From the NCBI GenBank assembly GCA_002104945.1, contig MCFH01000065.1:227491-291490 (forward strand): 64,000 nucleotides of DNA, read 5' to 3'. The position numbers and the translations under genes are program-made. Numbering within the stretch: position 1 is the stretch's first letter; the number at the start of each line of letters is the position of its first letter. The DNA is from Piromyces finnis finn. Lineage: Eukaryota > Fungi > Neocallimastigomycota. The notes beneath the pieces were generated by a model. The model did not search any database and was not told where the DNA came from. It worked only from the letters and a program-made list of their open reading frames with translations. This document shows positions 3,301 through 54,106 of the stretch, piece by piece.

Positions 3301-4918
3301 ATTCTAAATATTGGGTTGGTACGGCGACCAATTTATCTTTATTAATATTCTTTTCATTATTATTATTACTACATGATTCATTATCATTATTACATGTTTC
3401 ATTAATTTTCGTTACAATACATTTAACTTTTTTATTAAAACTAATATATTCATCATCGCTGTCATCTTCATCATTAATGGTTCTAACAAGGCGGCCTTTA
3501 ACATATTCTTTTTCTTCATGGTTTGGGACGGAGGGATCTACTTTCGGTTTTTTGGTTAAGCTTCGGTCGAGAACATCATGATCTAATTGATCATTCTTGG
3601 ACTTCTTTCTTGGTTTTCTTTTTCTTTTACCTTTGTTACAGTGTCTGGCACAATAACCAGAACTAAAAGCGATTTTCTTAGAGTCATAGAAAGCATTTGG
3701 ATTATGCTTCTTTATCCACGGCAAACCAAGAATAACATCAACACCGGGGACTTGTAATCCATAAAGTTGAATTACTTCGAAGTGATTTTTGCAACGGAGC
3801 ATGCACTTCTCAGTCCTTTCCCAAACACTAACAACTCCATCACTAACACCTGAAACACGGAATGGTTCTACCTTTTCCAACTTAATACCAAGGTCTTCAG
3901 CAAGACTTGGATTAATGAAATTTAATTCAGAACCGGAATCAATTAAAACCTTAATCTTAACTTCCGAAACTTCATTGGTACTCAAGTAAAAGTCCACAAG
4001 GTTTAAATCACTTTTCACTCCCTTGACTCCAACTTTGTAAATTTTTGGATTAACAATTTTTGGAGTCCTTTCTTTCACAATTCTTAACACTTTTCTGGGC
4101 TTTACTCTATTAGGACAATTAAATTTTAAATGTCCTGGTTGTTTACAAAGAAAACATAACCCCTTTTTCTTTTCTTCTTCAAAGTTGTCTATGTTTTCAT
4201 TGTAATTTTTACTTGATCCTTGGATATTCACATACCTTTTGCGTTTATTTTCTCTACTAATTCTAAATACATCCACATCCATAGGATCGTTAGCCCTTCT
4301 ACCATTAAAATAAAATTCACTTAGAGAATTCCTTTTCATCATATCTTCAACTAAAATAGTTGAAGAAATCAATTGTTCAATTGAAGTTGGGTTTGATTCA
4401 ATGAAAGCCAACTTCTCCCTAAGTGGTGGTAATAAACCTTTCAGAAACATGTAGATTTTTGCGCTGTCATTAAAGCTTGAATTTTGGCTAATACGTTGAA
4501 ACTCGGTAATGTAATCTAATACCTGACCAAGTTTCCTTTGGCGAAGATTATCTAATTTACCGTTAGCTACAACGGTATCGTATCTATAACTGCCAAAATT
4601 AGCCTTCAACCTATCTACAAATTCATCATAATGGTTTAAAACCCCACTATTATTCTTCATCAACACTGAAGCCCATTCCAAAGGTTTACCAGAGAAGTAT
4701 GATATAACGAAGTCGACCTTGACTCGATCTGTATTATACAGTGTCGGTCGAGTACGAAATACCAACTCAACTCTGGTTAAAAATCCATCCAATTCTCTTT
4801 GTTTACCAGAAAATATCGGTGGAGCATTAATAATGTTCCCCGAATTCCCAGAAACACCCACAGTCCTATCACCCATCTCTAAATTTAAATTTTCAAACTC
4901 ACTAATTAAGTCCTCCAA
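329..4918 (-). CDS. Gag-Pol polyprotein (Gag, CCHC knuckle, aspartic protease, RT, RNase H, integrase, chromodomain)
   Basis: CFLCKQPGHLKFNC knuckle; LIDSGS protease; RLCIDYRRLN and YIDDILIYS (RT); ETDASNYAVG and DKELLAI (RNase H); HHCC zinc finger, SIDFIVDLP, SDRGSQF and QTERVN (integrase); GPFEI; YKLSWKGFDKSTWV chromodomain. The ORF begins at TTG; the first ATG is at 4876. Confidence 0.97.
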   Translation of the reverse strand: MEDLISEFENLNLEMGDRTVGVSGNSGNIINAPPIFSGKQRELDGFLTRVELVFRTRPTLYNTDRVKVDFVISYFSGKPLEWASVLMKNNSGVLNHYDEFVDRLKANFGSYRYDTVVANGKLDNLRQRKLGQVLDYITEFQRISQNSSFNDSAKIYMFLKGLLPPLREKLAFIESNPTSIEQLISSTILVEDMMKRNSLSEFYFNGRRANDPMDVDVFRISRENKRKRYVNIQGSSKNYNENIDNFEEEKKKGLCFLCKQPGHLKFNCPNRVKPRKVLRIVKERTPKIVNPKIYKVGVKGVKSDLNLVDFYLSTNEVSEVKIKVLIDSGSELNFINPSLAEDLGIKLEKVEPFRVSGVSDGVVSVWERTEKCMLRCKNHFEVIQLYGLQVPGVDVILGLPWIKKHNPNAFYDSKKIAFSSGYCARHCNKGKRKRKPRKKSKNDQLDHDVLDRSLTKKPKVDPSVPNHEEKEYVKGRLVRTINDEDDSDDEYISFNKKVKCIVTKINETCNNDNESCSNNNNEKNINKDKLVAVPTQYLEFSEVFNEKNCEVLPPHRPYDCEIKLKDDSTLFYGPLYPLTEVEREELKKYIDENLNKGFIRKSSSPAGAPILFVKKKDGSLRLCIDYRRLNNITIRNSYPLPLISDLLDRVKNAKIFTKLDLKSAYNLVRIKEGDEYKTAFRTRYGHFEYLVMPFGLKNAPATFQHFINDVLSDYLDDFVISYIDDILIYSNNIEEHHEHVKKVLKKLLENNLYVKLEKCEFDVEKTTFLGYVISKDGLQMDENKVKAILDWPVPKNVKEVQSFIGLCNYYRIFIKDFAKIANPLHKLTRKNVAFNWVKEDQDAFILLKSLFTSAPILKHADSNKQFIVETDASNYAVGAILSQEFDGKLHPIAFLSKSLTSCQRNYPIYDKELLAIVVALEEWRHYLEGARHPFIIYTDHKNLTFPRKPEMLSQRQIRWNLFLSRFDFKLIYRAGKKSGKPDILSRRSDHVENNINSDVSCLTISFHHSDNKPLIDSILLELKNDDLYNSIVQFKMNGSACNAPIKNIDKVIIDNEGFLLYNNLIYVPKSLRTRVLELHHDSVAAGHFGIKKTTELISRNFWWPRFHSDVKSFIKSCVTCCKSKVPRHKPYGLLSPLDTPSRPWSDISIDFIVDLPKSRDMTTLMVVVDRFTKFAHAIPLRCLPTASIAADAFIANVFRLHGLPDSIISDRGSQFTSDFWSRLCDLLNINHSLSTANHPQTDGQTERVNGILEQYFRCFINKKQNNWVDLIPFAEFAYNNTLQQSINQSPFFANYGFHPKFSLEIPANDRPSRAEQRVIDMNENFKLLKENLEKAKETYKKYADMKRMIPPEFEMGKKVWLLKDSPGTNLKRKLAPQMLGPFEIIEKVSSLAFKLKLPKTMRCHPVFHVSLLEPYFENKFNDRSNRRKRNIHLNTDLIEKIPEKIEKMKSVNGETFYKLSWKGFDKSTWVSEDHIPDKQLIQEFERNSKKSKYKSNDSSMKIRKNKVGNLIKHRYQPFVIEIPSRKDSL

Positions 4919-5029: not shown

Positions 5030-5145
5030 AAACTATTTCTACAAAAACGATGTTAGTTAATACAAAAGTTATTCAAACTCGATCTGTTATACAGTGTCGA
5101 ACAAGTTTTGTATTATATAATAATAATATTAATCAGAGTAGTTTT

Positions 5146-5182
<37 letters not shown>

Positions 5183-5192
5183 CTTCTGCTAG

Positions 5193-5288
5193 GGTAGCAA
5201 CAAAGTTTCTTCAATACTCTCTTGAACCAAGGTAGCAACAAAGTTTCTTCAATAATCTCTTGAACCAAGGTAGCAACAAAGTTTCTTC
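5193..5288. repeat. 38-nt tandem repeat (about 2.5 copies) in the 5' leader of copy 1
   Basis: ggtagcaacaaagtttcttcaata... starts at 5193, 5231 and 5269. Confidence 0.9.
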
Positions 5289-5325
5289 GGGCGGTAGATA
5301 TCCTAACGTACTCTTGAAGTAGTTA

Positions 5326-5337
5326 GGTAATTGTTAT
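5326..5337 (-). promoter_or_regulatory. Self-priming-type primer binding site (ATAACAATTACC)
   Basis: Directly follows the 5' LTR end (...TTACA) and has no TGG. It is complementary to GTAATTGTTAT inside the LTR (about 5460-5470). Confidence 0.85.
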
Positions 5338-5941: not shown

Positions 5942-7993
5942 GTCTTTTATAGTATATAATAAATTTATTTCAATAAGATAACTTATTCCTCAACTACTTT
6001 TAATTAATAAATATCAAAATTTTAATTTTCATATTTCTCAATGTATTTTAAATAAATCTAAAATTATTATATACTACGTCTAAAAGATGTCGCTCAGACT
6101 CTATCCTATCAAAAGGTGTCGAGCGAGGTCTTTTATAATATATAATAAATATATTTCAATAAAATAACTTTTTCCAATAAGTGATATTTACATTTTAATT
6201 CACTTATTTCTCAATTTCATTTTAATTAATAAATATCAAAATTTTAATTTTCATACAATATATTTTAAATAATTCTATAATTATTATATACCATGTTTAA
6301 AAGATGTCGCTCAGACTCTATCCTATCAAACGGTGTCGAGCGAGGTCTTTTAAGTATATAATAAGTTCATTTCAAAATAACAATTAATAATTCATTCAAA
6401 TAAGTGAAATCAACATACTAATTCACTTATTTCTCAATATATTTAAATAATTTTAAAATTTTATTAACTTTTTCTTAATTTTCTTTCTTTTTAAATAAGT
6501 TTTAATTTTCTTACTTTGCAATTAATTTTTTGATTTAATTTACTCTTTTAATTGTATATATCCAATTTAATTTATAATATACTATGTATAAAAGATGTCG
6601 CTCAGACTCTATCCTATCAAACGGTGTCGAGCGAGTTCTTTTTATAGTATATTATAATTAAATTTAATTTTAAAAGAGTTTCATCAATTTAAAAACAAGA
6701 GTATTTCATAAATATATTTCTATTAGTATTACAGATAGATTTTATATATAAAGATTTCATTGTTCCATACAGTAGAATTACACTTATTCCAATTCCAATA
6801 TAAAAAGGAAAGTTTCACAGAGTAGAAGTTCCACAAGCAAAGTTCCACGAGATTCGTTCAAAAGAATTCCACGAAGGAAGGATTTCACAAGGTAGTGTTC
6901 CACAAGTAGGTAAAAATTCCACAATTATAGTTCCACAAAGTAGTGTTTCACAAAATTTATTTAGAATTTCACAAAGTAGGGTAACACAAAATTAATGTTA
7001 CACTGACAGAAGTTACACCATAAATAGTTCCACAAGGTAGGCTACTCAAGTAGACAAAAAAAAAATTTCCGAAGAGAAAAAATTTCCGAAAAGTTCCAAA
7101 TTTTCTACGGTAGCAATTCCCAATGTTGTAACTTCAGAAAATAAAAATTGTTTTATTATTAAATATAAAACGTGTTTTTTAATAAGAAAAGGTAATTGTT
7201 ATTGTAAAAGTATAAAATTTAAAACAGATTTTATACTTAAAACAAAACAATTTTTATTAACACAAAAATAAAAAAATAAAACATTAAATTTTTATTTTAA
7301 AAAAAAACATTTTTATTTAAACTCTTAAAAATATTATTAACTATATAATAGTTAATAATTAAAAAATTGAAAATAACAATTACCTCGATTTAACAAATAA
7401 AAATTACATGTATTTATATTTTTTCATAATTATATTCTAATATATTATTCTATTTAAATAAACATATATTTAATATAAAATAAACAAAACTAATTTAATT
7501 AAATAATAAAATAACAGAACTAAACTAAACTAATTCATTATACTTTTAATTCAATTTGAGTAAACTCAAAATTGAATAAAGCCCATGTATTTTCTATAAA
7601 TTAATTTAATATTATCAATACTATTCTTAATATATTTCCTATTGAAATATAAATAAATCTATTTTTAAAACTAAGTTAAAATTATTAAACTATTCTAAAT
7701 TTAAATAAAAAAGTATAATCTATTCTAAAATCAAATAAAAAGTATTTAAAAAATATTTTAATTATTTTAAATATTTGAAATATTTAAATTTAATTAAAAT
7801 TCTTTTATTCCTTAAACTTAAATATTTATCTTAATTTAAATTTAACGGAATTATTATAAAATAATTTATTATTAAATTATTCCATAAAATTTACTCAAAA
7901 ATTTTATAATCAGTTTTACTAAATATTAATTTATTATTTAATAATTAATAATTAATTATTAAATAATCTAAAGATATATCTTATATCTTTACA
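5942..7993 (-). mobile_element. Non-coding LARD-like LTR element, copy 2 (5' LTR type B at 7203-7993, PBS 7191-7202, leader, first three array cores; cut by chromovirus copy 1)
   Basis: Reverse complement of 10444-12495 with only a few substitutions. Starts TGTAAAGATAT at 7993, where it interrupts the 3' LTR of chromovirus copy 2. Confidence 0.9.
6082..6642 (-). repeat. Three conserved ~53-nt hairpin cores of the LARD array (6082-6134, 6299-6351, about 6590-6642)
   Basis: aaaagatgtcgctcagactctatcctatcaaa(a/c)ggtgtcgagcgag(g/t)tctttt occurs three times, separated by AT-rich linkers. Confidence 0.95.
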
Positions 7994-8249: not shown

Positions 8250-10443
8250 TTATAAAGAATCCTTTCTCGAAGGAATTTCAATTACAAATGGTTGGTATCT
8301 ATGCTTAATTAGATTACCAACTTTATTCTTTCTTATTCTCATGGAGGAGTCATTCAACTTATGTTTTGACTTTTTAGAGTTTCTTTCGAACTCTTGTATT
8401 AATTGTTTGTCCGGGATCTGATCTTCAGAAACCCAAGTGGATTTGTCAAATCCTTTCCACGATAACTTATAAAATGTCTCACCATTAACAAATTTCATCT
8501 TCTCAATTTTTTCTGGAATTTTTTCAATTAAATCTGTGTTAAGATGAATATTTCTTTTCCTACTATTAGACCTATCTATAAACTCGTTTTCAAAGTATGG
8601 TTCTAACAATGAGACATGAAAGACTGGATGACATCTCATTGTCTTTGGGAGTTTCAATTTAAAAGCGAGAGAACTAACTTTTTCAATTATTTCAAATGGA
8701 CCAAGCATTTGAGGTGCTAATTTCTTCTTCAAGTTAGTTCCCGGAGAATCTTTCAATAACCATACCTTCTTTCCCACTTCAAATTCCGGGGGACTCATTC
8801 TTTTCATATCGGCATATTTCTTATATGTTTCTTTTGCTTTTTCTAAGCTTTCTTTTAATAATTTAAAGTTTTTATTCATATCAATTACTCTTTGTTCAGC
8901 TCTACTAGGTCTATCATTAGCCGGGATTTCCAAGCTGAACTTTGGATGAAAACCATAATTAGCAAAGAATGGGGATTGATTTATAGATTGCTGTAAAGTG
9001 TTATTATATGCAAATTCAGCAAATGGAATAAGATCAACCCAGTTATTCTGCTTCTTATTGATAAAACAACGGAAATATTGTTCTAATATGCCGTTCACCC
9101 TCTCCGTTTGACCATCTGTCTGCGGATGGTTAGCAGTTGACAATGAATGATTGATATTAAGAAGGTCACAAAGTCTTGACCAGAAATCAGAAGTAAATTG
9201 CGAGCCTCTATCAGAAATGATGGAATTAGGAAGACCATGCAAACGGAAGACATTGGCAATAAAAGCATCAGCAGCAATTGAAGCAGTAGGAAGACAACGT
9301 AAAGGAATGGCGTGAGCAAATTTAGTAAATCTATCGACAACAACCATAAGTGTAGTCATATCTCTGGACTTAGGAAGATCAACAATAAAGTCGATAGAGA
9401 TATCAGACCAAGGCCTACTAGGAGTGTCCAAAGGGGATAACAATCCATAAGGCTTATGTCTAGGGACTTTGGATTTGCAACAAGTCACGCAAGATTTAAT
9501 AAAGGATTTAACGTCTGAATGAAATCTTGGCCACCAAAAGTTTCTTGAAATAAGTTCAACGGTTTTCTTAATGCCGAAATGGCCAGCAGCAACAGAATCA
9601 TGATGGAGTTCTAAAACTCTAGTCCTAAGAGATTTAGGAACATAAATAAGATTGTTAAATAACAAAAATCCTTCACCATCAATAATAACTTTATCAATAT
9701 TTTTAATAGGTGCATTACTTGTAGAACCATTCATTTTAAATTGAACAATGGAATTGTACAAATCGTCATTTTTAAGTTCTGATAAAATAGAATCTATTAA
9801 AGGTTTGTTATCGCTATGATGAAGTGAAATTGTAAGACAAGAAACATTAGAGTTAATATCATTCACTAAATGATCACTTCTACGAGACAGAATGTCAGGC
9901 TTTCCAGATTTCTTTCCAGCTCTATAGATGAGTTTAAAGTCAAATCTGGATAAGAACAAATTCCATCTAATTTGTCTCTGAGATAACATTTCAGGTTTTC
10001 TAGGAAATGTTAAGTTCTTGTGATCAGTATAAATTATGAACTGATGGCGTGCACCCTCTAAGTAATGACGCCATTCTTCAAGAGCAACTATAATAGCTAA
10101 GAGTTCCTTGTCATATATAGGATAGTTTCTTTGACAACTCGTCAAACTTTTTGAAAGAAATGCAATAGGATGTAATTTGCCATCAAATTCTTGAGAGAGA
10201 ATAGCACCGACAGCATAATTACTAGCATCAGTTTCTACAATAAATTGTTTATTACTATCCGCATGTTTCAGAATAGGAGCTGACGTGAACAGAGATTTTA
10301 ATAAAATAAAAGCGTCCTGATCTTCTTTCACCCAGTTAAAAGCAACATTCTTTCTAGTGAGTTTGTGAAAAGGGTTTGCAATTTTAGCAAAGTCTTTAAT
10401 AAAAATTCTGTAATAGTTGCATAAACCAATAAAAGACTGAACC
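8250..10443 (-). pseudogene. 3' half of gag-pol (RT thumb, RNase H, integrase, chromodomain) of copy 2
   Basis: Open frame, nearly identical in protein to the C-terminal half of 329-4918. Separated from its 5' half by an insertion. Confidence 0.93.
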
Positions 10444-11234
10444 TGTAAAGATATAATATATATCTTTAGATTATTTAATAATTAATTATTAATTATTAAA
10501 TAATAAATTAATATTTAGTAAAACTGACTATAAAATTTTTGAGTAAATTTTATGGAATAATTTAATAATAAATTATTTTATAATAATTCCGTTAAATTTA
10601 AATTAAGATAAATATTTAAGTTTAAGGAATAAAAGAATTTTAATTAAATTTAAATATTTCAAATATTTTAAATAATTAAAATATTTTTCAAATACTTTTT
10701 ATTTAATTTTAGAATAGATTATACTTTTTTATTTAAATTTAGAATAGTTTAATAATTTTAACTTAGTTTTAAAAATAGATTTATTTATATTTCAATAGGA
10801 AATATATTAAGAATAGTATTGATAATATTAAATTAATTTATAGAAAATACATGGGCTTTATTCAATTTTGAGTTTACTCAAATTGAATTAAAAGTATAAT
10901 GAATTAGTTTAGTTTAGTTCTGTTATTTTATTATTTAATTAAATTAGTTTTGTTTATTTTATATTAAATATATGTTTATTTAAATAGAATAATATATTAG
11001 AATATAATTATGAAAAAATATAAATACATGTAATTTTTATTTGTTAAATCGAGGTAATTGTTATTTTCAATTTTTTAATTATTAACTATTATATAGTTAA
11101 TAATATTTTTAAGAGTTTAAATAAAAATGTTTTTTTTTAAAATAAAAATTTAATGTTTTATTTTTTTATTTTTGTGTTAATAAAAATTGTTTTGTTTTAA
11201 GTATAAAATCTGTTTTAAATTTTATACTTTTACA
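10444..11234 (+). repeat. 5' LTR (type B, 791 bp) of LARD copy 1
   Basis: Direct repeat of 15794-16586 and inverted repeat of 7203-7993. Confidence 0.95.
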
Positions 11235-11246
11235 ATAACAATTACC
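11235..11246 (+). promoter_or_regulatory. Self-priming-type PBS of the LARD (ATAACAATTACC)
   Basis: Identical to the chromovirus PBS. Perfectly complementary to GGTAATTGTTAT at 11053-11064 within its own LTR. Confidence 0.88.
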
Positions 11247-11399
11247 TTTTCTTATTAAAAAACACGTTTTATATTTAATAATAAAACAATTTTTATTTTC
11301 TGAAGTTACAACATTGGGAATTGCTACCGTAGAAAATTTGGAACTTTTCGGAAATTTTTTCTCTTCGGAAATTTTTTTTTTGTCTACTTGAGTAGCCTA

Positions 11400-11630
11400 C
11401 CTTGTGGAACTATTTATGGTGTAACTTCTGTCAGTGTAACATTAATTTTGTGTTACCCTACTTTGTGAAATTCTAAATAAATTTTGTGAAACACTACTTT
11501 GTGGAACTATAATTGTGGAATTTTTACCTACTTGTGGAACACTACCTTGTGAAATCCTTCCTTCGTGGAATTCTTTTGAACGAATCTCGTGGAACTTTGC
11601 TTGTGGAACTTCTACTCTGTGAAACTTTCC
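11400..11630 (+). repeat. Cluster of about 11 YTGTG(G)AA motifs in the LARD leader
   Basis: cttgtggaac, ctttgtgaaa, tttgtggaac, ttcgtggaat, ctcgtggaac and similar motifs recur every 12-35 nt. Confidence 0.75.
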
Positions 11631-11779
11631 TTTTTATATTGGAATTGGAATAAGTGTAATTCTACTGTATGGAACAATGAAATCTTTATATATAAAATCT
11701 ATCTGTAATACTAATAGAAATATATTTATGAAATACTCTTGTTTTTAAATTGATGAAACTCTTTTAAAATTAAATTTAA

Positions 11780-13300
11780 TTATAATATACTATAAAAAGA
11801 ACTCGCTCGACACCGTTTGATAGGATAGAGTCTGAGCGACATCTTTTATACATAGTATATTATAAATTAAATTGGATATATACAATTAAAAGAGTAAATT
11901 AAATCAAAAAATTAATTGCAAAGTAAGAAAATTAAAACTTATTTAAAAAGAAAGAAAATTAAGAAAAAGTTAATAAAATTTTAAAATTATTTAAATATAT
12001 TGAGAAATAAGTGAATTAGTATGTTGATTTCACTTATTTGAATGAATTATTAATTGTTATTTTGAAATGAACTTATTATATACTTAAAAGACCTCGCTCG
12101 ACACCGTTTGATAGGATAGAGTCTGAGCGACATCTTTTAAACATGGTATATAATAATTATAGAATTATTTAAAATATATTGTATGAAAATTAAAATTTTG
12201 ATATTTATTAATTAAAATGAAATTGAGAAATAAGTGAATTAAAATGTAAATATCACTTATTGGAAAAAGTTATTTTATTGAAATATATTTATTATATATT
12301 ATAAAAGACCTCGCTCGACACCTTTTGATAGGATAGAGTCTGAGCGACATCTTTTAGACGTAGTATATAATAATTTTAGATTTATTTAAAATACATTGAG
12401 AAATATGAAAATTAAAATTTTGATATTTATTAATTAAAAGTAGTTGAGGAATAAGTTATCTTATTGAAATAAATTTATTATATACTATAAAAGACCTCGC
12501 TCGACACCTTTTGATAGGATAGAGTCTGAGCGACATCTTTAGATATTGTATATAATAAATTAAATTGAATATATAATTAAAACAAATTAAAATTTGATTA
12601 TATAATAAGTAAATTTGAAATGAATTTATTATATACTTAAAAGACCTCGCTCGACACCTTTTGATAGGATAGAGTCTGAGTGACATCTTTTAGATATAGT
12701 ATATAATAAATTAAAATTAAGAAATGAATTAAAATTTTACAATAAAAGTAAAAGTAATAAATGTGTAAAGTTAGTTAAATAAATAAATTATTCTTTATTA
12801 TAATAAGATTTCGATGACACCTTTTTAGAGGACAGAGTCAGATCGACATCTTTTTGGGAAATAGTATATAATAAATTAAATTGAAAATACTATAAATTAA
12901 TTTAACTTGAAAATTTGAAATATATAATTTAATTTAATGAAGTTAGAAAATGATTTGATATTTAAAATTACTTTTAAAATAATTTAATTTTATACTAAAT
13001 AAATAATTCGATGACACCTTTTCTTTAAAGGATAGAGTCAGGTCGACTTCTTTAATATGAAGATACAATATAAATTCGATTAACTAATTAAATAAATAAA
13101 ATATATTCAAGGATTATATATTATTAATTAAATTAGATAAATACAATTAAGAAGTTTATTAAATAATATATTAAAATATTATGAAGTAATACGAAAACGA
13201 GCTTAAAAAAAAAATAATTTAATTTCATTGTAATAACATGTTTTATACTTTATAAAGAATTCGCTGACACCAGTTGATAGGATGGAGTTGACTTCTTTTA
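11780..13300 (+). repeat. Array of about 8 conserved hairpin cores with variable AT-rich linkers (possible structured ncRNA array)
   Basis: Cores at about 11795, 12086, 12303, 12489 and 12639 (near identical), then about 12804, 13005 and 13254 (progressively diverged). Consensus AAAAGACCTCGCTCGACACCTTTTGATAGGATAGAGTCTGAGCGACATCTTTT. Confidence 0.93.
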
Positions 13301-15758
13301 TATAAAGGTGTATTTTATATAACTGAATATTTGACTAAATAGAAAATTCTTAATAATTAGAATATAAATTTAAAGCATTTTTAATTTGATTTGAATTTAT
13401 CAACAAAAGTCAATACAAATTTAGTTATTTAAAAAGTTATACATTTATTAAAAAAAAAAAAAAAAAAAAAAAAATTAATTTTATATTTCGTAAATTAAGA
13501 TAATTTGATTGTAATAGTTTATTAAATAATTCATTAAACAAATGATTAAGATTAATAATTAAAATAATTTGAATTCAATATGAGGAGGTTTTACAAATTT
13601 AGTTGTTAAATAAATTATGTTTTTTATATTTAATAAATTAAAATAAACTAATTAAATAAAGAATTTCTTATAATTGTAGAATAAATTCACAAATTTAATT
13701 TGATTTGAATTTATTATAAAGAAGTTATTGTATATCTAGTTAATAAGTTTATATTTTTATTAAGAAGTAAGTTTTATATTTAAAAGATTCAAATAACTTG
13801 AATAAATTAATATAGTAGCTTTGATTGAATAATTATAAAGTTAAATAAATATATAATAAGAAATGAGTGTAATATTTTTTTATTCTTAATAATATGATGG
13901 TAGTGAAATCAGAGCTAGAAAATTAATCTATTCTGGATCTGTTCTTAATTTCATTTAGTATTGTAGAATTAGAAATAGCTATAATAGAAATTAATGAGGA
14001 ATAGTTTTAGTAATAGTAACAATTTGATAATATAATAGTTAGTATTAATAATAATTAAAAAAAAAAATAGAATTAATAAATACAACAAATGAAAAAAAAA
14101 TATAATAAAATGTAATAAATAGAATAAATTAATAAATAGAATAAGTTAATAAATAGAATAAGTTAATAAATATGATAAATGTAATAAATATAATGAATAA
14201 AACAAATATAAATTAATGTAATATGTATAATAATTATAAGAGTTTTTAATAAATGAATAGTTTTTATGTACTTAATAAAACGAACTTTATAAAGGAAAAA
14301 AAAAAAAAAAAAGATTTTAATCTTTATACAATTCTTTTTAATGGAAGTATAATGAGATTGATAACTAAAATTACTATATATTGATTGTAGGAAATTAAAT
14401 GATATAATTATTGAAATTCATATATTCCTTTAATCAATAAATAAGATAAATGGAGTAAAATATGTTTTTAAACTAAATTTAAATATATCAATAGCTTAGT
14501 AATAATTAAATAAGGTGATGAATTTAAAATTGCTTTAATCTTTATATGGCATTTTTAATTTATTATCATACCTTTTATTCAAAAATGTATCAGCTCTATT
14601 TTAATATTTTAAGTGATGCTTTTGATGAAGTATTTTAATTACTTTATAATTAATGATATTTAGTACAACATTATGTATATGTTTATATCAATTCTGTGAT
14701 GTTTTATTGATGATATTTAAATTTATGAATTCATTGTTAAATTTTTAAAAAAAAAGAAATAATTTTATAATACCATATATTGATAAATTATAAAATAAAA
14801 GAGAATTATAAATATGCTAAAAGTATTTTAAAAATGTCTAAAAATGATAAATTTGTTAATTAAATTATAGTATTTACTTGATGACTTGATACCACTTTTG
14901 TTTATTTAATAATAAGATTAAAAAAAAAAATAGTGGTATAGTTAATATAATTATTGAATGATGTTTTTCCATTATTATTAATGAATGTTAATTTTTTTTA
15001 CAAATATTTTATTACTAAGAATTTTGTTATATTTATTTGCTTAATAATAACCTTTAAAAAAAATAAGTTCCACTTGGTTTAAAGTTTGTACAATAATAAA
15101 AAACATTTAATACTCTTTAAATGCTATTTTCTTTATAATTTTAGAATTGTCTGTTTGATATATTTTATATAAATTTTATCACAGACTTTTCATTTAAATG
15201 AGAGGGTGAACGAGATATTGTTCCAATATCTCCGTTGGTTAATAAAATCGAATTGATTGTTATATTGGAATCTACTTATAATATTTTATTGTAATCAATC
15301 AATCAATTTCAATTTTATACAAACTATGGATTTAATTTAAAATTTAATATTGAAATTTCTTCAGCTAATAAATCAAAGAAAGTTGAACAGATTATTATAA
15401 GTATTAATAAAAAGTATTAAAATTGTAAAATAGAATTTTAATCATGCATAAGAAGATTATAAAAGTCATGATGATCAAGAAGAATTGAATAAATAAAAAA
15501 TTTGAAACTTAAGTAAATGTTTTGTTTTGAATACTTAAATAAAAATGTTAATAGAAAACAATTTATAAATAACCATAATCTGAATATAAAAACAAATGGA
15601 TTCTTGATGATTAAGTTTTAGATAAATTATTAGAATTATGTATAAGTAACAAGAATGATAATAAGAGTATAAATAAATTAAATACTTATATATTTTTTTA
15701 ACAATGTTATGATTTAGAAAAAGTAGTAACCATTTGTTATTTAAATTTCTTCAAGAAA

Positions 15759-15793
15759 ATAATCTCGCAGGAGCTCGACTTAAAGGGCGAGAT
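15759..15793 (+). promoter_or_regulatory. Conserved 3' cis segment plus PPT shared with the autonomous chromovirus
   Basis: AATCTCGCAGGAGCTCGACTTAAAGGGCGAGAT versus AATCTCGCAGGAGCTCGACTTAGAGAGAGAGAT (minus strand, 293-325). Confidence 0.88.
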
Positions 15794-16586
15794 TGTAAAG
15801 ATATAATATATATCTTTAGATTATTTAATAATTAATTATTAATTATTAAATAATAAATTAATATTTAGTAAAACTGACTATAAAATTTTTGAGTAAATTT
15901 TATGGAATAATTTAATAATAAATTATTTTATAATAATTCCGTTAAATTTAAATTAAGATAAATATTTAAGTTTAAGGAATAAAAGAATTTTAATTAAATT
16001 TAAATATTTCAAATATTTTAAATAATTAAAATATTTTTCAAATACTTTTTATTTAATTTTAGAATAGATTATACTTTTTTATTTAAATTTAGAATAGTTT
16101 AATAATTTTAACTTAGTTTTAAAAATAGATTTATTTATATTTCAATAGGAAATATATTAAGAATAGTATTGATAATATTAAATTAATTTATAGAAAATAC
16201 ATGGGCTTTATTCAATTTTGAGTTTACTCAAATTGAATTAAAAGTATAATGAATTAGTTTAGTTTAGTTCTGTTATTTTATTATTTAATTAAATTAGTTT
16301 TGTTTATTTTATATTAAATATATGTTTATTTAAATAGAATAATATATTAGAATATAATTATGAAAAAATATAAATACATGTAATTTTTATTTGTTAAATC
16401 GATGTAATTGTTATTTTCAATTTTTTAATTATTAACTATTATATAGTTAATAATATTTTTAAGAGTTTAAATAAAAAATGTTTTATTTTTAAAATAAAAA
16501 TTTAATGTTTTATTTTTTTATTTTTGTGTTAATAAAAATTGTTTTGTTTTAAGTATAAAATCTGTTTTAAATTTTATACTTTTACA
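15794..16586 (+). repeat. 3' LTR (type B) of LARD copy 1
   Basis: Matches 10444-11234 with one G/T substitution and small changes in homopolymer runs. Confidence 0.95.
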
Positions 16587-18990
16587 GAACCTCTTTAACA
16601 TTCTTGGGAACCGGCCAATCGATAATTGCTTTAACTTTATTCTCATCCATTTGCAACCCATCTTTTGAAATGACATAACCAAGAAAAGTGGTTTTCTCAA
16701 CATCAAACTCACATTTTTCTAATTTAACATAAAGATTATTTTCAAGTAGTTTCTTAAGTACCTTTTTAACATGCTCGTGATGTTCTTCGATATTATTAGA
16801 ATAAATAAGGATATCATCAATATATGAGATAACAAAATCATCTAAATAATCACTAAGAACATCGTTAATAAAGTGTTGAAAGGTTGCAGGTGCATTCTTT
16901 AATCCAAAAGGCATAACCAGATATTCAAAATGACCATACCTAGTACGAAAAGCCGTTTTGTATTCGTCACCTTCTTTAATACGAACAAGATTATAAGCAG
17001 ATTTGAGATCTAATTTAGTGAAAATTTTAGCATTTTTCACTCTTTCCAGAAGGTCACTTATTAAAGGTAAAGGATATGAATTACGAATTGTAATATCATT
17101 CAACCTTCTATAATCAATACAAAGTCTTAAGGAACCGTCCTTCTTTTTAACAAATAAAATTGGGGCACCAGCAGGAGACGATGATTTCCTAATAAAACCT
17201 TTATTTAAATTTTCATCTATATACTTTTTAAGTTCCTCTCTTTCAACTTCAGTTAATGGATACAAGGGTCCATAAAATAAAGTTGAATCATCCTTAAGTT
17301 TGATTTCACAATCATAAGGTCTATGAGGAGGTAACACTTCACAATTTTTTTCGTTAAACACTTCACTAAATTCTAAATATTGGGTTGGTACGGCGATCAA
17401 TTTATCTTTATTAATATCCTTTTCATTATTATTATTATTACTACATGATTCATTATCATTATTACATGTTTCAATAATTTTCGTTACAATACATTTAACT
17501 TTTTTATTAAAACTAATATATTCATCATCGCTGTCATCTTCATCATTAATGGTTCTAACAAGGCGGCCTTTAACATATTCTTTTTCTTCATGGTTTGGGA
17601 CGGAGGGATCTACTTTCGGTTTTTTGGTTAAGCTTCGGTCGAGAACATCATGATCTAATTGATCATTCTTGGACTTCTTTCTTGGTTTTCTTTTTCTTTT
17701 ACCTTTGTTACAGTGTCTGGCACAATAACCAGAACTAAAAGCGATTTTCTTAGAGTCATAGAAAGCATTTGGATTATGCTTCTTTATCCACGGCAAACCA
17801 AGAATAACATCAACACCGGGGACTTGTAATCCATAAAGTTGAATTACTTCGAAGTGATTTTTGCATCGGAGCATACACTTCTCAGTCCTTTCCCATACAC
17901 TAACAACTCCATCACTAACACCTGATACACGGAATGGTTCTACCTTTTCCAACTTAATACCAAGGTCTTCAGCAAGACTTGGATTAATGAAATTCAATTC
18001 AGAACCGGAATCAATTAAAACCTTAATTTTAACTTCCGAAACTTCATTGGTACTCAAGTAAAAATCCACAAGATTTAAATCACTTTTCACTCCCTTGACT
18101 CCAACTTTGTAAATTTTTGGATTAACAATTTTTGGAGTCCTTTCTTTAACAATTCTTAACACTTTTCTGGGCTTTACTCTATTAGGACAATTAAATTTTA
18201 AATGTCCTGGCTGTTTACAAAGAAAACATAATCCTTTTTTCTTTTCTTCTTCAAAGTTGTCCATGTTTTCATTGTAATTTTTACTTGATCCTTGGATATT
18301 CACATACCTTCTACGCTTGTTTTCTCTACTAATTCTAAATACATCCACATCCATAGGATCATCAGCCCTTCTACTATTAAAATAAAATTCACTAAGCGAA
18401 TTCCTTTTCATCATATCTTCAACTAAAATAGTTGAAGAAATCAATTGTTCAATTGAAGTTGGGTTTGATTCAATGAAAGCCAACTTCTCCCTAAGTGGTG
18501 GTAATAAACCTTTCAGAAACATGTAGATTTTTGCGCTATCATTAAAGCTTGAATTTTGGCTAATACGTTGAAACTCGGTAATGTAATCTAATACCTGACC
18601 AAGTTTCCTTTGGCGAATATTATCTAATTTACCGTTAGCTACAACGGTATCGTATCTATAACTGCCAAAGTTAGCCTTCAACCTATCTACAAATTCATCA
18701 TAATGGTTTAAAACCTCACTATTATTCTTCATCAACACTGAATCCCATTCCAACGGTTTACCAGAGAAGTATGATATAACAAAGTCGACCTTGACTCGAT
18801 CTGTATTATACAGTGTCGGTCGAGTACGAAATACCAACTCAACTCTGGTTAAAAATCCATCCAATTCTCTTAGTTTACCAGAAAATGTCGGTGGAGCATT
18901 AATAATGTTCCCCGAGTTCCCAGAAACACCTACAGTCCCATCACCCATCTCCAAATTCAAACTTTTAAACTCACTAATTAAGTCCTCCAA
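16587..18990 (-). pseudogene. 5' half of gag-pol (Gag, PR, most of RT) of copy 2
   Basis: Open frame homologous to residues 1 to about 800 of the copy 1 polyprotein. Also begins at TTG. Confidence 0.93.
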
Positions 18991-19186
18991 TTCAAAATAT
19001 AATATACAATATAAAATTAAAATGGTTTCTTACTACTGTTTCAAGTAAGTAATCTTAAAAAAAAATTTTTTTTTTTTTTTAATTACACTAGTACAATATA
19101 TTCTAATACAAAAGTTATTCAAACGCGTTCTGCAAAGCAGTGTCGAACAAGTTTTGTATTACTAATTCCTTTAAGATTTTAATAGT

Positions 19187-47774: not shown

Positions 47775-50700
47775 TATAGACATTTTTTCAAGAAAGCTGA
47801 AGAATCAGTTCTTGGAATGAGAGGCTTATATTTAGGTTTTCACAATTCGTGTCAAGCCTCACTTGAAAACTTCTTTGGAAAGTATATTATTTCTATTTAT
47901 GCTTTTAGTCTTTGGAATAGATTCAAATGTTCGATTGGAAATGTTTATATGCCTCATAGTCATCACAACATCTATGTTGATCATGCAAAGTTAGAAGTTC
48001 GCTTGTGGTTACAAACTCATTCATCCCATCCATCGATTCTTGTTAGTGATTTTAATATGTCTAAAGTAAAATTATCCAACTGGTTATCAACTAATGGATT
48101 AGGAGATTGGGAAATTCTTCCGCTTAGAGGGTCTACTATCTCTTGGACTCGAGGTGATCAATCTTCCGACATTGACCATGCTCTTATCAATTCGAAGATG
48201 AAAGATCTTATTTACTCAGGATCATTTATAAATAATTTTTATCCTGTATCAGACCATAAGCCACTTCTCATTAATGGTAAAATTATTCCTATGGAAGATT
48301 TTTCTAATGACTTTAATGTTCCTAAGAAAATTCTGAAATGGAATAGATTAAAATGTATTGAGGAAAAGGAATCTATTCTCAGTCATAATAAATTCCAAAT
48401 ACTTTCAGCAAAATTCAACGATCCTAATGTTTCTACAGATAAACTTTCCAAAGAGTTTACTTCAACTGCTTTTTCAATTGCAGACGAGCTCAGTATTACC
48501 TCAGCAAATAATGTTATAAAGTCTTCATTTCATATTTCACAACAAATTTTTAATCTTCAAAAAATCAAAATGAAGTTGTATAAGAGATTTAAAAAAGAAA
48601 GAATTTATGATATAGATGAATTTATTAAAAGAATTAAAATCTACCGTAAGCTCATTGATTACATACACAAAAGATGTAATGAATTTAGGAAACAAGAATA
48701 TCTTCATTGGATTAAAACAGGATGTGAGTATATGAAGAGTCATAATCCTAAGAAGGCCTGGAAATGGATCAAAAAAACTGCAAAAATTGGAAAAGATTCT
48801 TTCTTTATTGCTCAACCAATTAAAAACAAAAATGGAGAATTAGTTGTTGCTACAGAAGAATAACTTGAAGTGTGACATGATCATTTCGAAAAGCTTGCAT
48901 CAGATCCAAGTGGTGTAAGTCTTGATTTGGATCATTGGTATGAAGAACCAACGAATAAACGTTTTTCACTTCCTATGCTTGATGAATGGGATATCAACCA
49001 AGATATTAGTATTGATGAAGTCAAGTCAGCTATCCTCTCTACTCCAAATTATAAAGCATCAGGTCCGGATGGTATTCCAATTGAATTTTACAAAGCATTA
49101 ATTCCATCAAGTAATGATTCTAATAATGCTACAGATAATAATTCTTCCGGTAATACCACTTCAGATAATGATGCTCATGGGTTAAATTTTATTCTTAAAT
49201 TATTCAACCGTATTTGGGATGGAGACTTCCCCAGCTCTTGGAATGAATCCAGTATTGTTTCTATTCCTAAGAAGGGTGATTTGACAGATTGTGATAACTA
49301 TCGAGGTATATCACTTATCAATAATGGTATTAAGTTGATTTCCAAAATTGTCACCACTAGAATCTCAGAATATGGTCTTAAGAATAATTTCATTAGACCT
49401 GAACAATTTGGTTTTCGAAAAAAGGAAGAAAGTATTAGTCTTTTCATTTCAATCCAAGAAATACGCCGTAGACGTCAATTAGATAATAAAGAGACATATT
49501 TGGCCTTTTTAGATCTCAGGAAAGCATACGATTCAGTCCCAATCGGTAATATTCTCCATAAATTAGATTGTTTAGGAATCCGAGGTAAGAGTTTACAATT
49601 CATCAAAAATTTATATTTAACATCTAAGGCTAATGTCAAATTAGATGGACAATTCTCGAAATCTTTTGATGTGAAGAAAGGAGTCCGTCAAGGTTGCCCA
49701 CTTTCGCCTATTTTTTTTAATCTCTTTATTAATGATATATTTAAAGAGTGCGAAGATCTCGGAGTTAGTTTAGGTGATACTCGATGCTGTGGTGGACTTT
49801 TTGCAGATGATATAGTTATTTGTGCTCCAACAAGAGGATGCTTAAAAAAGATGCTTAGAAGAGTTAATGAATGGGCCTTGTATAATGAAATGGAATTTAG
49901 TATTCAGAAGTGTTCAACGATGGTGATTCGTCCTGAATCAATAGAAAATCAGAACAAGAGAGATCCAACATTTTACTTAGCAGGACAACCCATTCCAACT
50001 ACTGATTGTTATACTTATCTTGGTGTTCCATTTGATAAGAATTTGTCCCTTAAACCAGTTATTAAAATTCTTAATAACAAAGTTTTGAAAGGACTTTTCT
50101 CAGTCAGTAAATTCTTAAGAAATCCTAATATTCCTATTCCCTTCAAAAAGCTAGTACTTATTTTAAAAGTTATTAGCAGAGTTTCATACTTTGCACCATT
50201 ACTTGGATCCAACAAAGCTAGGTCTAAGATTGCTCAGAAGCATGTTAATAAAGGAATACGATGGGTTGCCGGAGTTCATAAAGCTGTATCGTTTATATCT
50301 TTATACTCTATCTCAAAAGATTTGAATATTCCTCCATTGTCAGCCAAATGTGCGTTAGCTCAGGTTAGATGTTTTAACAAATGGAAAAACTCGAATTGTA
50401 TTATCTCACACCTTGTCAATTACATTCCTAAATTTAGAAAATACACGTGGTGCAAATCAAGTAGGACACTTGATAAAAAATTAAAGAAACATGGAGATGT
50501 TAAAGCAGTTAAAAACTTTTATTGGAAAGATTTCTAAGGAAATTCAATCAAAGCACAATATTATGATGATAATAAATTTATTGAAACTAAAGATTTTATT
50601 AAATTATGTTATGAGTACCCAGAGTTTGCCTATGGCTTCTACTGGCTATTGAAAGCAAGAAGCGGATACAAGTTGGATGCTAGAGTTGCCAAAGCTGCTA

Positions 50701-51773
50701 AATTTGTTGATCCAGTTTGTCCTAACTACTGTCCATGTTGCAAGTGTGGTGTTCAAAGTATTAAGCATTGGTTATTAGATTGTCCAACATTTAGAGATAT
50801 CCGTATTAAACATTATGATTCCATAGTCCAGATATTAAATTTTTTCAGTCAACGTAATTCCAACAGTCCTATCAATAATAATGAAAATGTTAATATCAGT
50901 AGAGATAGTAATAATATTAATAATAATAGTAACAATAGTAATAGTAACAATAGTAATAGTAACAATAGTAATAGTATCATTAGTAATAATAACAATAGTA
51001 ATAATAACAACAGTAGTGGTAGAAATAATAATATTAGTAATGATAGCACTAGTGAAAATAATAATTCTAATTTAGATAGTAATTTAGTTAATAATAGTAA
51101 TAGTTTTAATAATCCGGTGAATATTCTAGTGTATGTAATAAAATATTTAAATTCCTTCTTGGGGGAAGAAATTTTAATAATGTCAATTACAATTCAAGGG
51201 AATAGAAAGAACTTTGCAAGTGTCAGATTCAATCTGGTACTAATGAAGGAACACCATTCTTGACGGTAACCGCGGAACTTCTAACCAAAATCATGCCTTT
51301 TGCTATTGGCCAGCAATAGTCAATGTTCAAAAGGTTTGAAGCAACATCCAAGAGCGTCAATGCTGAAGAAACAGTAAGACAGGCCAGGAGGGCCAGCGCA
51401 ACCAATGGAGATCATAATTTTGTAATTTTGTCCCATGAAAAAGTTTTGATCTTTGACTCGGTGTCCCATTGGAAATCAAATACAATTACTATATTTTAGA
51501 TGATCTAGAAAAGGTGCGTAGGTTTTGGAAGGGGAGGATTTCGGGCCCTTCGAAAACACGTTCTTTTTTAGATCTCGTATAACTGAACCTATTTTAGTAT
51601 AATAGAGGTTTTCTTACTTTAATTAAAATTACTAGAATACATTATACCCAATTTTTATTCATTTATGTTTATTTTTATTTTTAATTTTGTTTTTTTATAA
51701 CATGCATTATAATTTTAATTAAATTAAAATAAAGTTTAAAAATATTTGATGCGGTTAAAAAAAAAAAAAAAAA
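47775..51773 (+). mobile_element. 5'-truncated, mutated copy of the APE-type LINE with poly(A) tail
   Basis: Near identical to the reverse complement of 54107-57940. In-frame stops (e.g. about 48861, 50535) and a frameshift. A-run at 51757-51773. Confidence 0.95.
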
Positions 51774-52543
51774 GCTTATATAGTTGGTTGTTAATTAAGT
51801 TTGTACTTATTCTTTTTGTTTTCTTATTCCTTCATGTTTTATATTTTATTATATTTATTCTTTATTAAAAGGTTTTTTTATTAGAATGTTATTAACTACT
51901 TAATAGTCAATAACGATTACAATTTTTTAAATTTATATGAAATTTCAAACTATTTTTATTTTTTAAAATTACATTATAATATATTGATATAACTAGGTTC
52001 AATACAATTTTATTTTTAAGGGTTTTTGTGATTAACTACTTTATTATTAATTAAATTAAGACGTGTTTTTAATAATATTTACTAAATATTTAAGATTTTT
52101 TTTTAGACTTTATATATCCTCATCTAACCCCCTGAGTTATATATGGTATGTGATTGTACATTGTCATATCAGTACGACGTCGGCACAATTACCCTTCTGG
52201 GCAGGGTTAATATGGAATGGCTTATTGCTCTTAATGATCTTTCCCCACAAGACCGAGTTATCAACATCAGTGATCTCCTTGAACCTTTATTAGCGGAGGT
52301 TGATTAACAATGAGAACAACCCTCAAAGAACATAGTTAGTGACCTGTGAATTATTTGATACCCTTTCCTATGAATATTCTAAACTTCAGAGGAAAAACTG
52401 TTTGTTACGGAGAAAACTACCATACTGAATTAATTGCTTAGGGTAGAGTCTAGTGGTATAATTGTACTTATTTGAATTGGGGTTTGGCCTTTAAACCCTA
52501 TTTTTTAGCGCAAACCTGAAACAGGAAAATCGCTAAAGAACTG

Positions 52544-52617
52544 TCAATGACGGGGTTCGAACCAGAAGCCTTATAAATGCTAAGCGAGGTTTTAACAACC
52601 AATATAGAAACTGGAAC
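52544..52617 (-). pseudogene. Degenerate tRNA-Ala(AGC)-like relic
   Basis: CCTCGCTTAGCAT anticodon-arm-like segment and GGTTCGAACCCC T-loop in the right order; acceptor stem not intact. Confidence 0.3.
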
Positions 52618-52729
52618 GACTTTAATTTGATACATGATAAAATTATATAGTTAATAACTGATTAAGCTATTAAATAATTCCTAACCCTTAATTCAACTAT
52701 ATAAGTTTAATATTTTTAACTATATAATT

Positions 52730-54046
52730 AGAGAAGTTTTCAAGTGAGGCTTGACACGAATTGTGAAAACCTAAATATAAGCCTCTCATTCCAGGAACTG
52801 ATTCATCAGCTTTCTTGAAAAAGTGTCTATAGTTTCGTAAAGTAACACAACAAGGATACTCTGTATTCGATCCAGAACCATTACCAGTTTTTTGGAAACA
52901 TAAAAATAATGGTTTGAAAATAGCTGTGAAATAGCTAATACTAACTCTTCGTGATTCCACCTATTGCTGTTCCAACTAAGATAAAAAGAAAAGTTATCAG
53001 GCTTGTTGGATGAGAAAGAATCGTTGCTATTATTATTATTATTATTAAAGTTATCATTATTAATGGATGATGCATCAGAGGAATAAGTAGAACTATTGCT
53101 AGATGGCTGTAAAACTGAAGAACTATCAACTATTGAACTGTTATCAGAATTGATAAAACTATTAGAATTAATTGTTGAATGTTGAGATTGAAATTGTGTT
53201 TGTTGTAGATCTGGAATATTTTCATGATGGGAAACTTGTTGAAGATCTTGTTGAAGATCGGATTGTTGATGAGATTGTTGAACTGATTGATGAAATGATT
53301 ATTGAATTGATTGTTGATGTTTATTAGAAACTAAAATTTTACGTTTGAGTGTGGAAAAAGTGTATTTGTGATTCCTTCTACTACGAGCTGAAAAGGAAAT
53401 TGAGGTAACTGAAAGTTTCTTCTTTAACATGTGTAAGATTTTAATACAATCTTTCGATGAACCATGAACCTTGACTATGAAAAAGTGATCATTGATAGTC
53501 TGAAAATATTTAACACTAATAACTGAATTAAATTTATCTTCTATAATAACCTCGAGTTTTTCCCATAGCATATTAACTGACAATGATTGAATACCACGGA
53601 TAAAGAAGGAGCTAATATCATCTAAGGGGATACCATAAGAATGGGTACCACGTCTGATATAATTCTTATCTTTAATATAAAGGACTGACATGATAATTAA
53701 TTCTAATTAAAAATATTGAATATAAAATAAATACTAATAAAAAATTATAAATATAATGTATATGGAAAAAAACCTGTCTCTCTCTTCTTAAAAGTACTGG
53801 ATAGTACAAAAATTGTTACGATGCTTTGTTTAAAGTTTCTTTTTTTTGAATTCTAGTTGTAAATTTTCTTTAAAAATTCTGGTTTTGGTTTGTTGTTAGT
53901 AAATTCGATTCGCTTTTTGACACTAAAATTGTTTGACTTTACTTTTTATTAAATATTTAAATTGGTAAAAAATTTGAATCAAAGAATGTCGACACCAGAA
54001 AGCTTGTGAATAGTATTTTTACATGATGTAGAGTGAATCAGTCTCT
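52730..54046 (-). mobile_element. 3'-truncated LINE copy (5' UTR plus N-terminal ORF, with stops)
   Basis: Homologous to 57850-59170 and has the same 5' terminus (AGAGACTGA). Confidence 0.93.
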
Positions 54047-54106
54047 AAATTGTTTGACTTTACTTTTTATTAAATATTTAAATTGGTAAAAAATTTGAAT
54101 CATGAA

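Follow-up and report, generated by a model that had tools for sequence, protein, structure and literature searches.

In Ty1, Ty3 and retroviruses, cis-acting signals for packaging, dimerisation and priming are found between the primer-binding site (PBS) and gag. Chromoviruses are Ty3/gypsy elements that carry a chromodomain, and internal tandem-repeat arrays occur in long terminal repeat (LTR) retrotransposons of plants. The signals that direct packaging and dimerisation of Ty1 and Ty3, which are situated at the 5' end, have been defined only poorly (PMC4974528). BARE2, an element without Gag, has retained signals for packaging and dimerisation, and particles of BARE1 take it up (PMC3735527). 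The element analysed here is a non-coding LTR retrotransposon (large retrotransposon derivative, LARD) of 6143 bp from the fungus Piromyces finnis, located on the plus strand at positions 10444-16586 of a 64,000-nt stretch that is called the window in the following (GenBank assembly GCA_002104945.1, contig MCFH01000065.1, positions 227,491 to 291,490). Its leader contains eight tandem units of a stem-loop that is homologous to a hairpin in the leaders of coding chromoviruses, lies at the same position and in the same orientation as this hairpin, covaries in its base pairs, and has been amplified in the LARD.

The core motif of the stem-loop occurs eight times on the plus strand (zero occurrences expected). 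Units 1 to 5 (11776-11870, 12069-12161, 12285-12378, 12471-12563, and 12622-12714) are intact rods, the fifth with a G.U within its central helix. Units 6 (12784-12879) and 7 (12980-13078), the latter with a U.G, retain the core and have lost the outer stem; they reach 54.8 and 27.8 bits, respectively, with a covariance model. Unit 8 (13236-13321) is degenerate and has a 5-nt deletion in its 3' arm. The nucleotides in question (CAGG + C), which are missing here at 13288-13289, are retained in contigs from other genomic copies, so that the deletion is private to this insertion. An earlier note on this DNA had let every unit fold into a rod of about 90 nt and had proposed a core that pairs as AAAAGA/TCTTTT, a 2x2 internal loop, TCGCTC/GAGCGA, a bulged T, GAC/GTC, a single A opposite ATAGA, and CC(T)/(A)GG. 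This canonical pairing, in which the internal loop reads CC/CA, agrees with the sequence and with RNAfold. The rod is formed by units 1 to 5, where an A/T outer stem of 12-15 bp extends the core, and not by units 6 to 8, from which the outer stem has been lost. On the plus strand, the minimum free energies (MFE) of units 1 to 5 range from -28 to -32 kcal/mol as compared to -12 +/- 3 for dinucleotide shuffles (z -5.8 to -7.0), and each of these units still forms its own hairpin in a fold of the complete 1.6-kb array. For units 6 to 8 with their flanks, the fold is not more stable than that of shuffled sequences (z -1.0, 0.0, and -0.1 on the plus strand; about 0 to -1.5 altogether). A 5-bp CCTTT/AGAGG stem that had been suggested for unit 6 would leave a sterically impossible loop of 2 nt, and at most 4 bp (CCTT/GAGG, with one T.G) can form. 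The linkers between the units are tandemly homologous (217-nt period, 85%). Consisting of five near-identical and three degenerate units, the array alone cannot carry an argument from covariation. A MAFFT alignment of the eight units (A1) shifts units 6 to 8 by one base, and an alignment of 12 cores (A4) mis-registers the apical stem and the 3' arm of a hairpin located in gag (see below). Counts for the window sequences were taken from a hand-segmented alignment that was checked against the sequence, and covariation was formally tested on two other alignments (A5 and A6).

A covariance model built from units 1 to 5 (R1) was run unfiltered over the window. Besides the units themselves and their palindromic reverse matches, it found the leaders of the chromoviruses, which are the candidate helpers of the LARD, and weaker matches in gag, with all chromovirus matches lying on the sense strand. 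The leader hairpin of chromovirus 1 (5054-5115, minus strand, sense), which is situated 5' of gag, scored 28.8 bits (E 3e-4 over the window), and that of chromovirus 2 (19084-19168, minus strand, sense) 27.3 bits. A rod of 93 nt within gag of chromovirus 1 (4686-4778, minus strand) has a sense MFE of -33.4 kcal/mol (z -4.8; antisense -27.6), and R1 matched the same rod in gag of chromovirus 2 (18758-18850, minus strand). The apex of this gag-internal rod, GACACTGTATAATACAGATCGAGT, almost equals the helper's own leader hairpin, and the Gag protein at this site aligns gap-free to relatives that have no hairpin there, which suggests a copied or converted RNA element laid over coding sequence.

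Further homologs were obtained via the Gag protein. The gag part of the helper gave 14 protein matches with 42-48% identity, ten of which are encoded on the twelve contigs that were examined (eleven of metagenomic origin and one belonging to a genome assembly). Wherever a contig reached far enough upstream, which was the case for eight related chromovirus contigs, R1 detected a sense-strand hairpin 65-145 nt 5' of the gag start, with one match per element and E values from 6e-10 to 9e-3. The scores were 51.1 bits for contig L121 (E 6e-10), 42.3 for L130, 36.1 for L131, 33.7 for L123/L124, 31.9 and 28.4 for the two matches of L122, 30.5 for L128, 27.5 for L129, and 22.7 for L127, where the hairpin lies at the contig end. 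The hairpins of the relatives fold into rods of 75-100 nt (z -2.3 to -6.6 in seven of the eight, -1.2 in the eighth), the outer stems of which have zero sequence similarity between lineages. The core of the metagenomic relative L121, GACACCGTTTGATAGGAGAGAGTC, differs from unit 1 in one of 24 letters, and the distance from the PBS to the hairpin is 525 nt in L121 versus 541 nt to unit 1 of the LARD. Both elements also have in common the PBS, the region of the polypurine tract (PPT), and the order LTR, PBS, CTAC-type repeats, poly(A/T), and hairpin, which in L121 is followed by gag. The LARD has its LTR ends, its PBS, and the hairpin family in common with the chromoviruses of the window, but its hairpin core is nearer to that of L121 than to theirs. 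While the helper in the window carries the hairpin twice, in the leader and in 5' gag, the coding relatives have it once. Therefore, the array represents a tandem amplification of a leader stem-loop. The clade of hairpin-bearing chromoviruses stems from AT-rich genomes, probably those of gut fungi. The L131 contig was deposited with a metagenome-assembled genome labelled "Erysipelotrichaceae bacterium" (GCA_015059045.1) and encodes a complete eukaryotic chromovirus polyprotein in this bacterial-labelled bin; probably, a fungal contig from a gut metagenome ended up in the wrong bin. A DNA-pattern scan of metagenomes was too loose and returned at least 120 loci, all of them chance matches or an unrelated bacterial gene, and scans for the exact core in collections of viral and prokaryotic genomes, neither of which contains fungal genomes, were blank.

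Covariation was first quantified for nine distinct leader hairpins, aligned by fitting to the model (A5). Standard pairs make up 88.3% of its cells, compared to 64.2% after shuffling (0 of 500 shuffles reach the observed value) and 26-43% with slid partners; both sides have changed in 24 of 33 pairs, and the covariation score is 0.475 (shuffled 0.131, slid at most 0.118). As such an alignment leans towards the model, the test was repeated with 16 sequences that MAFFT had aligned blind to structure (A6): eight from the relatives, five units of the LARD, the two leader hairpins of the helpers, and one hairpin from gag. From A6 alone, RNAalifold recovers the central 6+3-bp helix. In this helix 141 of 142 cells are paired (99.3%; shuffled 81.7%, reached by 0 of 500; slid at most 41.5%), and the covariation score amounts to 0.570 (shuffled 0.221, slid at most 0.11). 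Six of the nine pairs show double compensatory changes. One position, for example, is AU in 10 sequences, CG in three, and UA in three, and another is GC in 11, AU in two, GU in two, and CG in one. The conserved unpaired letters are distributed asymmetrically: the 5' side has the bulged A within GACACC, and the 3' side has AUAGA as part of GGAUAGAGUC.

The individual substitutions can be followed within the array. The double compensatory change reported for unit 6 (TCGAT/ATCGA, C-G to A-T) and the T.G wobble of unit 7 (TCGAT/GTCGA) are both present. The polarity of the compensatory change has to be reversed, with the A-T of the TCGAC/GTCGA type seen in the relatives being ancestral and the canonical C-G derived. 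At the two variable pairs, the sequences form a stepwise series: A-U and C-G in the ancestral state, A-U and U.G in unit 7, A-U and U-A in unit 6, C.U and U.G in unit 8 of other copies, and the derived C-G and U-A in units 1 to 5. Of the proposal that selection acts on RNA structure with preference for the sense strand, the part concerning base pairing stands, far more firmly than the earlier note was able to show, carried by the homologous hairpins of autonomous relatives and not by the array alone, while the sense-strand part is weakly supported by the features that follow.

The central helix contains seven G-U cells in A6, which correspond to about five independent events, and zero A-C cells (one-sided p ~0.03). 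The canonical LARD units carry one A-C-type position. An energetic preference of the single units for the plus strand was not confirmed: the antisense strands of units 1 to 5 fold at least as stably (-28 to -34.6 kcal/mol, z -6.4 to -8.5), in part because the C.A in the 2x2 loop turns into a G.U on the minus strand. The sense strand is favored by the gag hairpins of the helpers (by up to 6 kcal/mol in 93-nt stretches) and by the cores of their leader hairpins, and the whole array (11740-13360) folds with -323.5 kcal/mol on the plus and -291.9 kcal/mol on the minus strand, a difference of 32, in a sequence with a strong G>C skew of +0.28. Judged from such sequence features, the hairpin is likely to act in sense-strand RNA.

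For the LARD, the sense strand is defined by the layout of the element. The 5' LTR (10444-11234) and the 3' LTR (15794-16586) have TG..CA ends and are flanked by a 5-bp target site duplication (TSD), GAACC, at 10439-10443 and 16587-16591; the PBS, ATAACAATTACC (11235-11246), directly follows the 5' LTR, and the PPT, AAAGGGCGAGA(T) (15783-15793), precedes the 3' LTR. Hence the plus strand is the sense strand, as the earlier note had it. Paired LTRs with a TSD, a PBS and a PPT in place, and a long interior (4.56 kb) without intact gag or pol together characterize the element as a LARD. The longest open reading frame (ORF) of the interior, with 76 aa, runs across units 4 and 5, is spurious, and gave no recorded match in a look-up. 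The interior has kept an integrase remnant of 56 residues (tblastn, E 2.5e-8), and the LARD is therefore a decayed chromovirus derivative. Low-stringency blastn of the LARD against the helper drowned in A/T-rich noise, and tblastn and stricter blastn were used instead. The PBS is of the self-priming type, the complementary sequence GGTAATTGTTAT being located in the 5' LTR (11053-11064), and L121 has the same Tf1-type layout (5968-5982 with 6121-6132). At position 11053 the 5' LTR has a G, whereas its 3' counterpart and other copies have a T. The PBS sequence is the same in the LARD, the helper chromovirus, and L121, and the tract of the PPT is found in L121 too. Between the PBS and the first hairpin, the leader (11300-11700, plus strand) contains short repeats of the CTACC-TTGTGGAAC type. 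Such CTACC/CTACTGC-containing repeats are present in about 10 copies in the LARD, in three in the helper (5180-5330, minus strand), and also in L121 (6440-6600), and constitute a second leader motif that is likewise multiplied in the LARD.

The window has a G+C content of 13-34%, is thus very AT-rich, and is eukaryotic in content. Its Ty3/gypsy chromoviruses encode gag, protease, reverse transcriptase (RT), RNase H, integrase, and chromodomain, and it also encodes a sugar transporter. ORFs resembling those of long interspersed nuclear elements (LINEs), with RT and an endonuclease/exonuclease/phosphatase domain, are located on both strands at 47817-58812, so that retroelements of several classes lie nested together here. 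The LARD itself splits the pol of a minus-strand chromovirus, the halves of which are the ORFs at 16582-18990 and 8250-10331. A shortened second LARD copy (5942-7993, minus strand) is inverted and 100% identical to 10444-12495, forming a perfect inverted repeat of 2,052 nt with it, and abuts the 5' LTR of chromovirus 1. This repeat could have arisen by insertion or conversion very recently, or it could be an artefact of the assembly. Because of the identity, its copies of units 1 to 3 (6567-6661, 6276-6368, and 6059-6152, minus strand) are not independent data.

Taken together, these features lead us to a model in which the array is an amplified cis-acting signal of the leader. The chromoviruses of this clade carry the stem-loop once in the 5' leader of the genomic RNA, between PBS and gag. 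It consists of a 9-bp central helix (6 + 3 bp with a bulge of 1-2 nt between them), a short apical stem (CC/GG) closed by a loop that varies, the conserved unpaired A and AUAGA, and a lineage-specific A/U-rich outer stem completing a rod of 75-100 nt. In the LARD the leader hairpin was duplicated in tandem to eight copies, of which five are intact and three decaying. The array probably arose when replication slipped, or reverse transcription jumped between templates, at the hairpin. In the sense-strand RNA the hairpin would be read by proteins of the helper, most plausibly for recognition by Gag or for packaging, and its multiplication would raise avidity, thereby helping the gene-less LARD to compete for the particles of the helper. 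We consider it more likely than not that the hairpin functions in one way or another as a cis-acting RNA element and that its amplification matters. By analogy with known retroelements, Gag recognition or packaging is its most attractive specific role, which we propose tentatively. As expected for a packaging signal, the structure covaries, is common to helper and LARD, and is positioned between the PBS and early gag in the LARD, in both helpers, and in the eight related contigs. Moreover, a gene-less element needs to be recognized by helper proteins, and this need together with the leader position favors a packaging role. Slightly more speculative still is the notion that the array is an amplified Gag-recognition signal by which a LARD with five to eight copies out-competes a helper with one or two for virus-like particles. 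The apical loops differ from hairpin to hairpin (UUUGAU, UUUUAAG, UAAGUAU, GUGA, and others) and are non-palindromic, so that a kissing-loop dimerisation site, which was also considered, is unlikely.

Several observations weigh against this model. The rod is lost in three of the eight units, the copy number of the array may not be under selection, and units 1 to 5 may simply be young duplicates in an array that can have arisen neutrally by slippage at hairpins. Regarding the strand, the model-fitted outer stems contain five A-C besides nine G-U cells, the mean sense-minus-antisense difference over LARD units and relatives is +1.4 kcal/mol, i.e., towards antisense (Wilcoxon p 0.20), and the advantage of the plus strand in the fold of the whole array may reflect only the G>C skew. 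Contigs of three runs, which can only be guessed to derive from RNA, cover the array at 99-100% identity without giving strand or ends. Finally, template switching at DNA hairpins can yield compensatory changes as well (PMC8794818).

If the hairpin is a cis-acting RNA element, it might also serve a purpose other than packaging, such as control of gag translation, nuclear export or stability, or as a pause or transfer site in reverse transcription, and its amplification in the LARD would then be a neutral by-product of slippage. Structure, position, and covariation speak for such a role as much as for packaging, the proximity of the hairpin to the gag AUG would suit it, and the decay of units 6 to 8 is what one would expect if extra copies were not needed. 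Control of translation fits the coding relatives and not the LARD, since it is useless to a gene-less element; even so, five copies remain intact, and the family has a high copy number. We thus regard a non-packaging role as rather unlikely.

The equal folding of both strands would also be compatible with a palindrome maintained at the DNA level without any RNA function, its symmetry being kept by template switching or hairpin-templated repair, its expansion being due to slippage, and the compensatory changes being mutational. Template switching creates and repairs stems in one step (PMC8794818), and A/T flips as in the outer stem of unit 1 are expected from it. However, the helix has been kept among elements with 42-48% gag identity, at a fixed position and orientation and with asymmetric conserved unpaired motifs, and the near-complete pairing of the central helix is likewise difficult to reconcile with such an origin. 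One-sided intermediates, namely the G-U pairs of units 5 and 7 and of the hairpins of helper and L123, together with the C.T in other copies of unit 8, point to stepwise compensation instead of one-step copying, and we consider a mere DNA palindrome improbable.

The size of the rods had led to the description "pre-miRNA-like" in the earlier note, and it could be envisaged that rods of about 90 nt are precursors of microRNAs (miRNAs) or small interfering RNAs (siRNAs), being diced to small RNAs of 20-25 nt with which the element, its helper, or genes of the host would be regulated. Units 1 to 5 are indeed near-perfect rods of this size with strongly negative z scores, which fold independently within the array. 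Size is all that stands behind the description, though. A hairpin of 60-100 nt with a long duplex is formed by units 1 to 5 only, and Rfam has no match at the gathering score, the sole match with E<1 being a spurious one to a bacterial small RNA (24.8 bits versus a cutoff of 51.4 bits). The hairpin goes back to a leader element that coding chromoviruses have in single copy, conservation concerns the letters of unpaired loops and the inner helix and not a duplex of arm length, the outer stems are wholly different between lineages, and small RNAs targeting the element itself would harm it. Such a precursor function is therefore very unlikely.

Being imperfect inverted repeats with A/T-rich ends, the units might also be taken for a small foldback or MITE-like (miniature inverted-repeat transposable) element that was inserted several times independently, or for sites of a dimeric DNA-binding protein. 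Both readings are scarcely credible, because all units have one orientation, homologous linkers, and no TSDs, for which reasons an origin as MITE or foldback was rejected, because a single homolog occupies the same leader position in autonomous relatives, and because bulges and a spacing of 50 nt are unlike a symmetric protein site. A self-cleaving, retrozyme-like ribozyme was rejected, as no ribozyme covariance model matched.

In our amplified-signal model, a compact stem-loop (core of ~55 nt, rod of 75-100 nt) is a testable candidate for the means by which a gene-less retrotransposon secures the proteins of its helper, in a fungal lineage the mobile elements of which have hardly been studied. 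If the model is true, it would imply an arms race in copy number over a packaging signal and would provide the first defined candidate packaging element for this chromovirus clade. Even with another function, or with none, the hairpin would be a clean case of structure-preserving evolution in the leader of a retroelement.

Among the closest described counterparts are LARDs and other non-autonomous LTR retrotransposons with a helper, such as BARE2 with BARE1 (PMC3735527), in which a gene-less or Gag-less element has LTR ends, PBS, PPT, and leader signals in common with a coding partner and is mobilised in trans; the Piromyces LARD differs from them in that the common leader stem-loop has been multiplied to eight tandem copies. 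The 5' domains of Ty1 and Ty3 (PMC4974528) and retroviral Psi resemble the hairpin as structured RNA that lies between the PBS and the start of gag, or reaches into gag, and is needed by Gag for recognition or packaging in these systems, and the window helper likewise reaches gag, with a second copy of the hairpin in 5' gag. In contrast to those domains, the hairpin has zero sequence similarity to them and no palindromic kissing loop, and its function is deduced. With the self-priming chromoviruses of the Tf1 type, the elements share the complementarity between the PBS and the 5' LTR and an order of pol domains that includes the chromodomain, but the hairpin array is separate, beginning ~540 nt 3' of the PBS and outside the priming structure. 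Like the internal arrays of plant elements, it is a non-coding internal segment that was tandemly duplicated with variable spacing; unlike them, the repeat unit covaries, is structured, is common to autonomous relatives, and is not satellite-like. Hairpins produced by template switching (PMC8794818) offer a route to perfect stems and multi-base compensatory changes that is relevant to the A/T outer stems, but leave the fixed position, the orientation, the conserved unpaired motifs, and the G-U intermediates unexplained. In the literature searched, we found no LARD with an eight-fold tandem covarying leader stem-loop, and the hairpin family of this chromovirus clade was not found there either. 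LARDs, pairs of helpers and parasites, and structured leader signals are all known, and what appears to be new is the multiplication of a covarying leader hairpin in a LARD.

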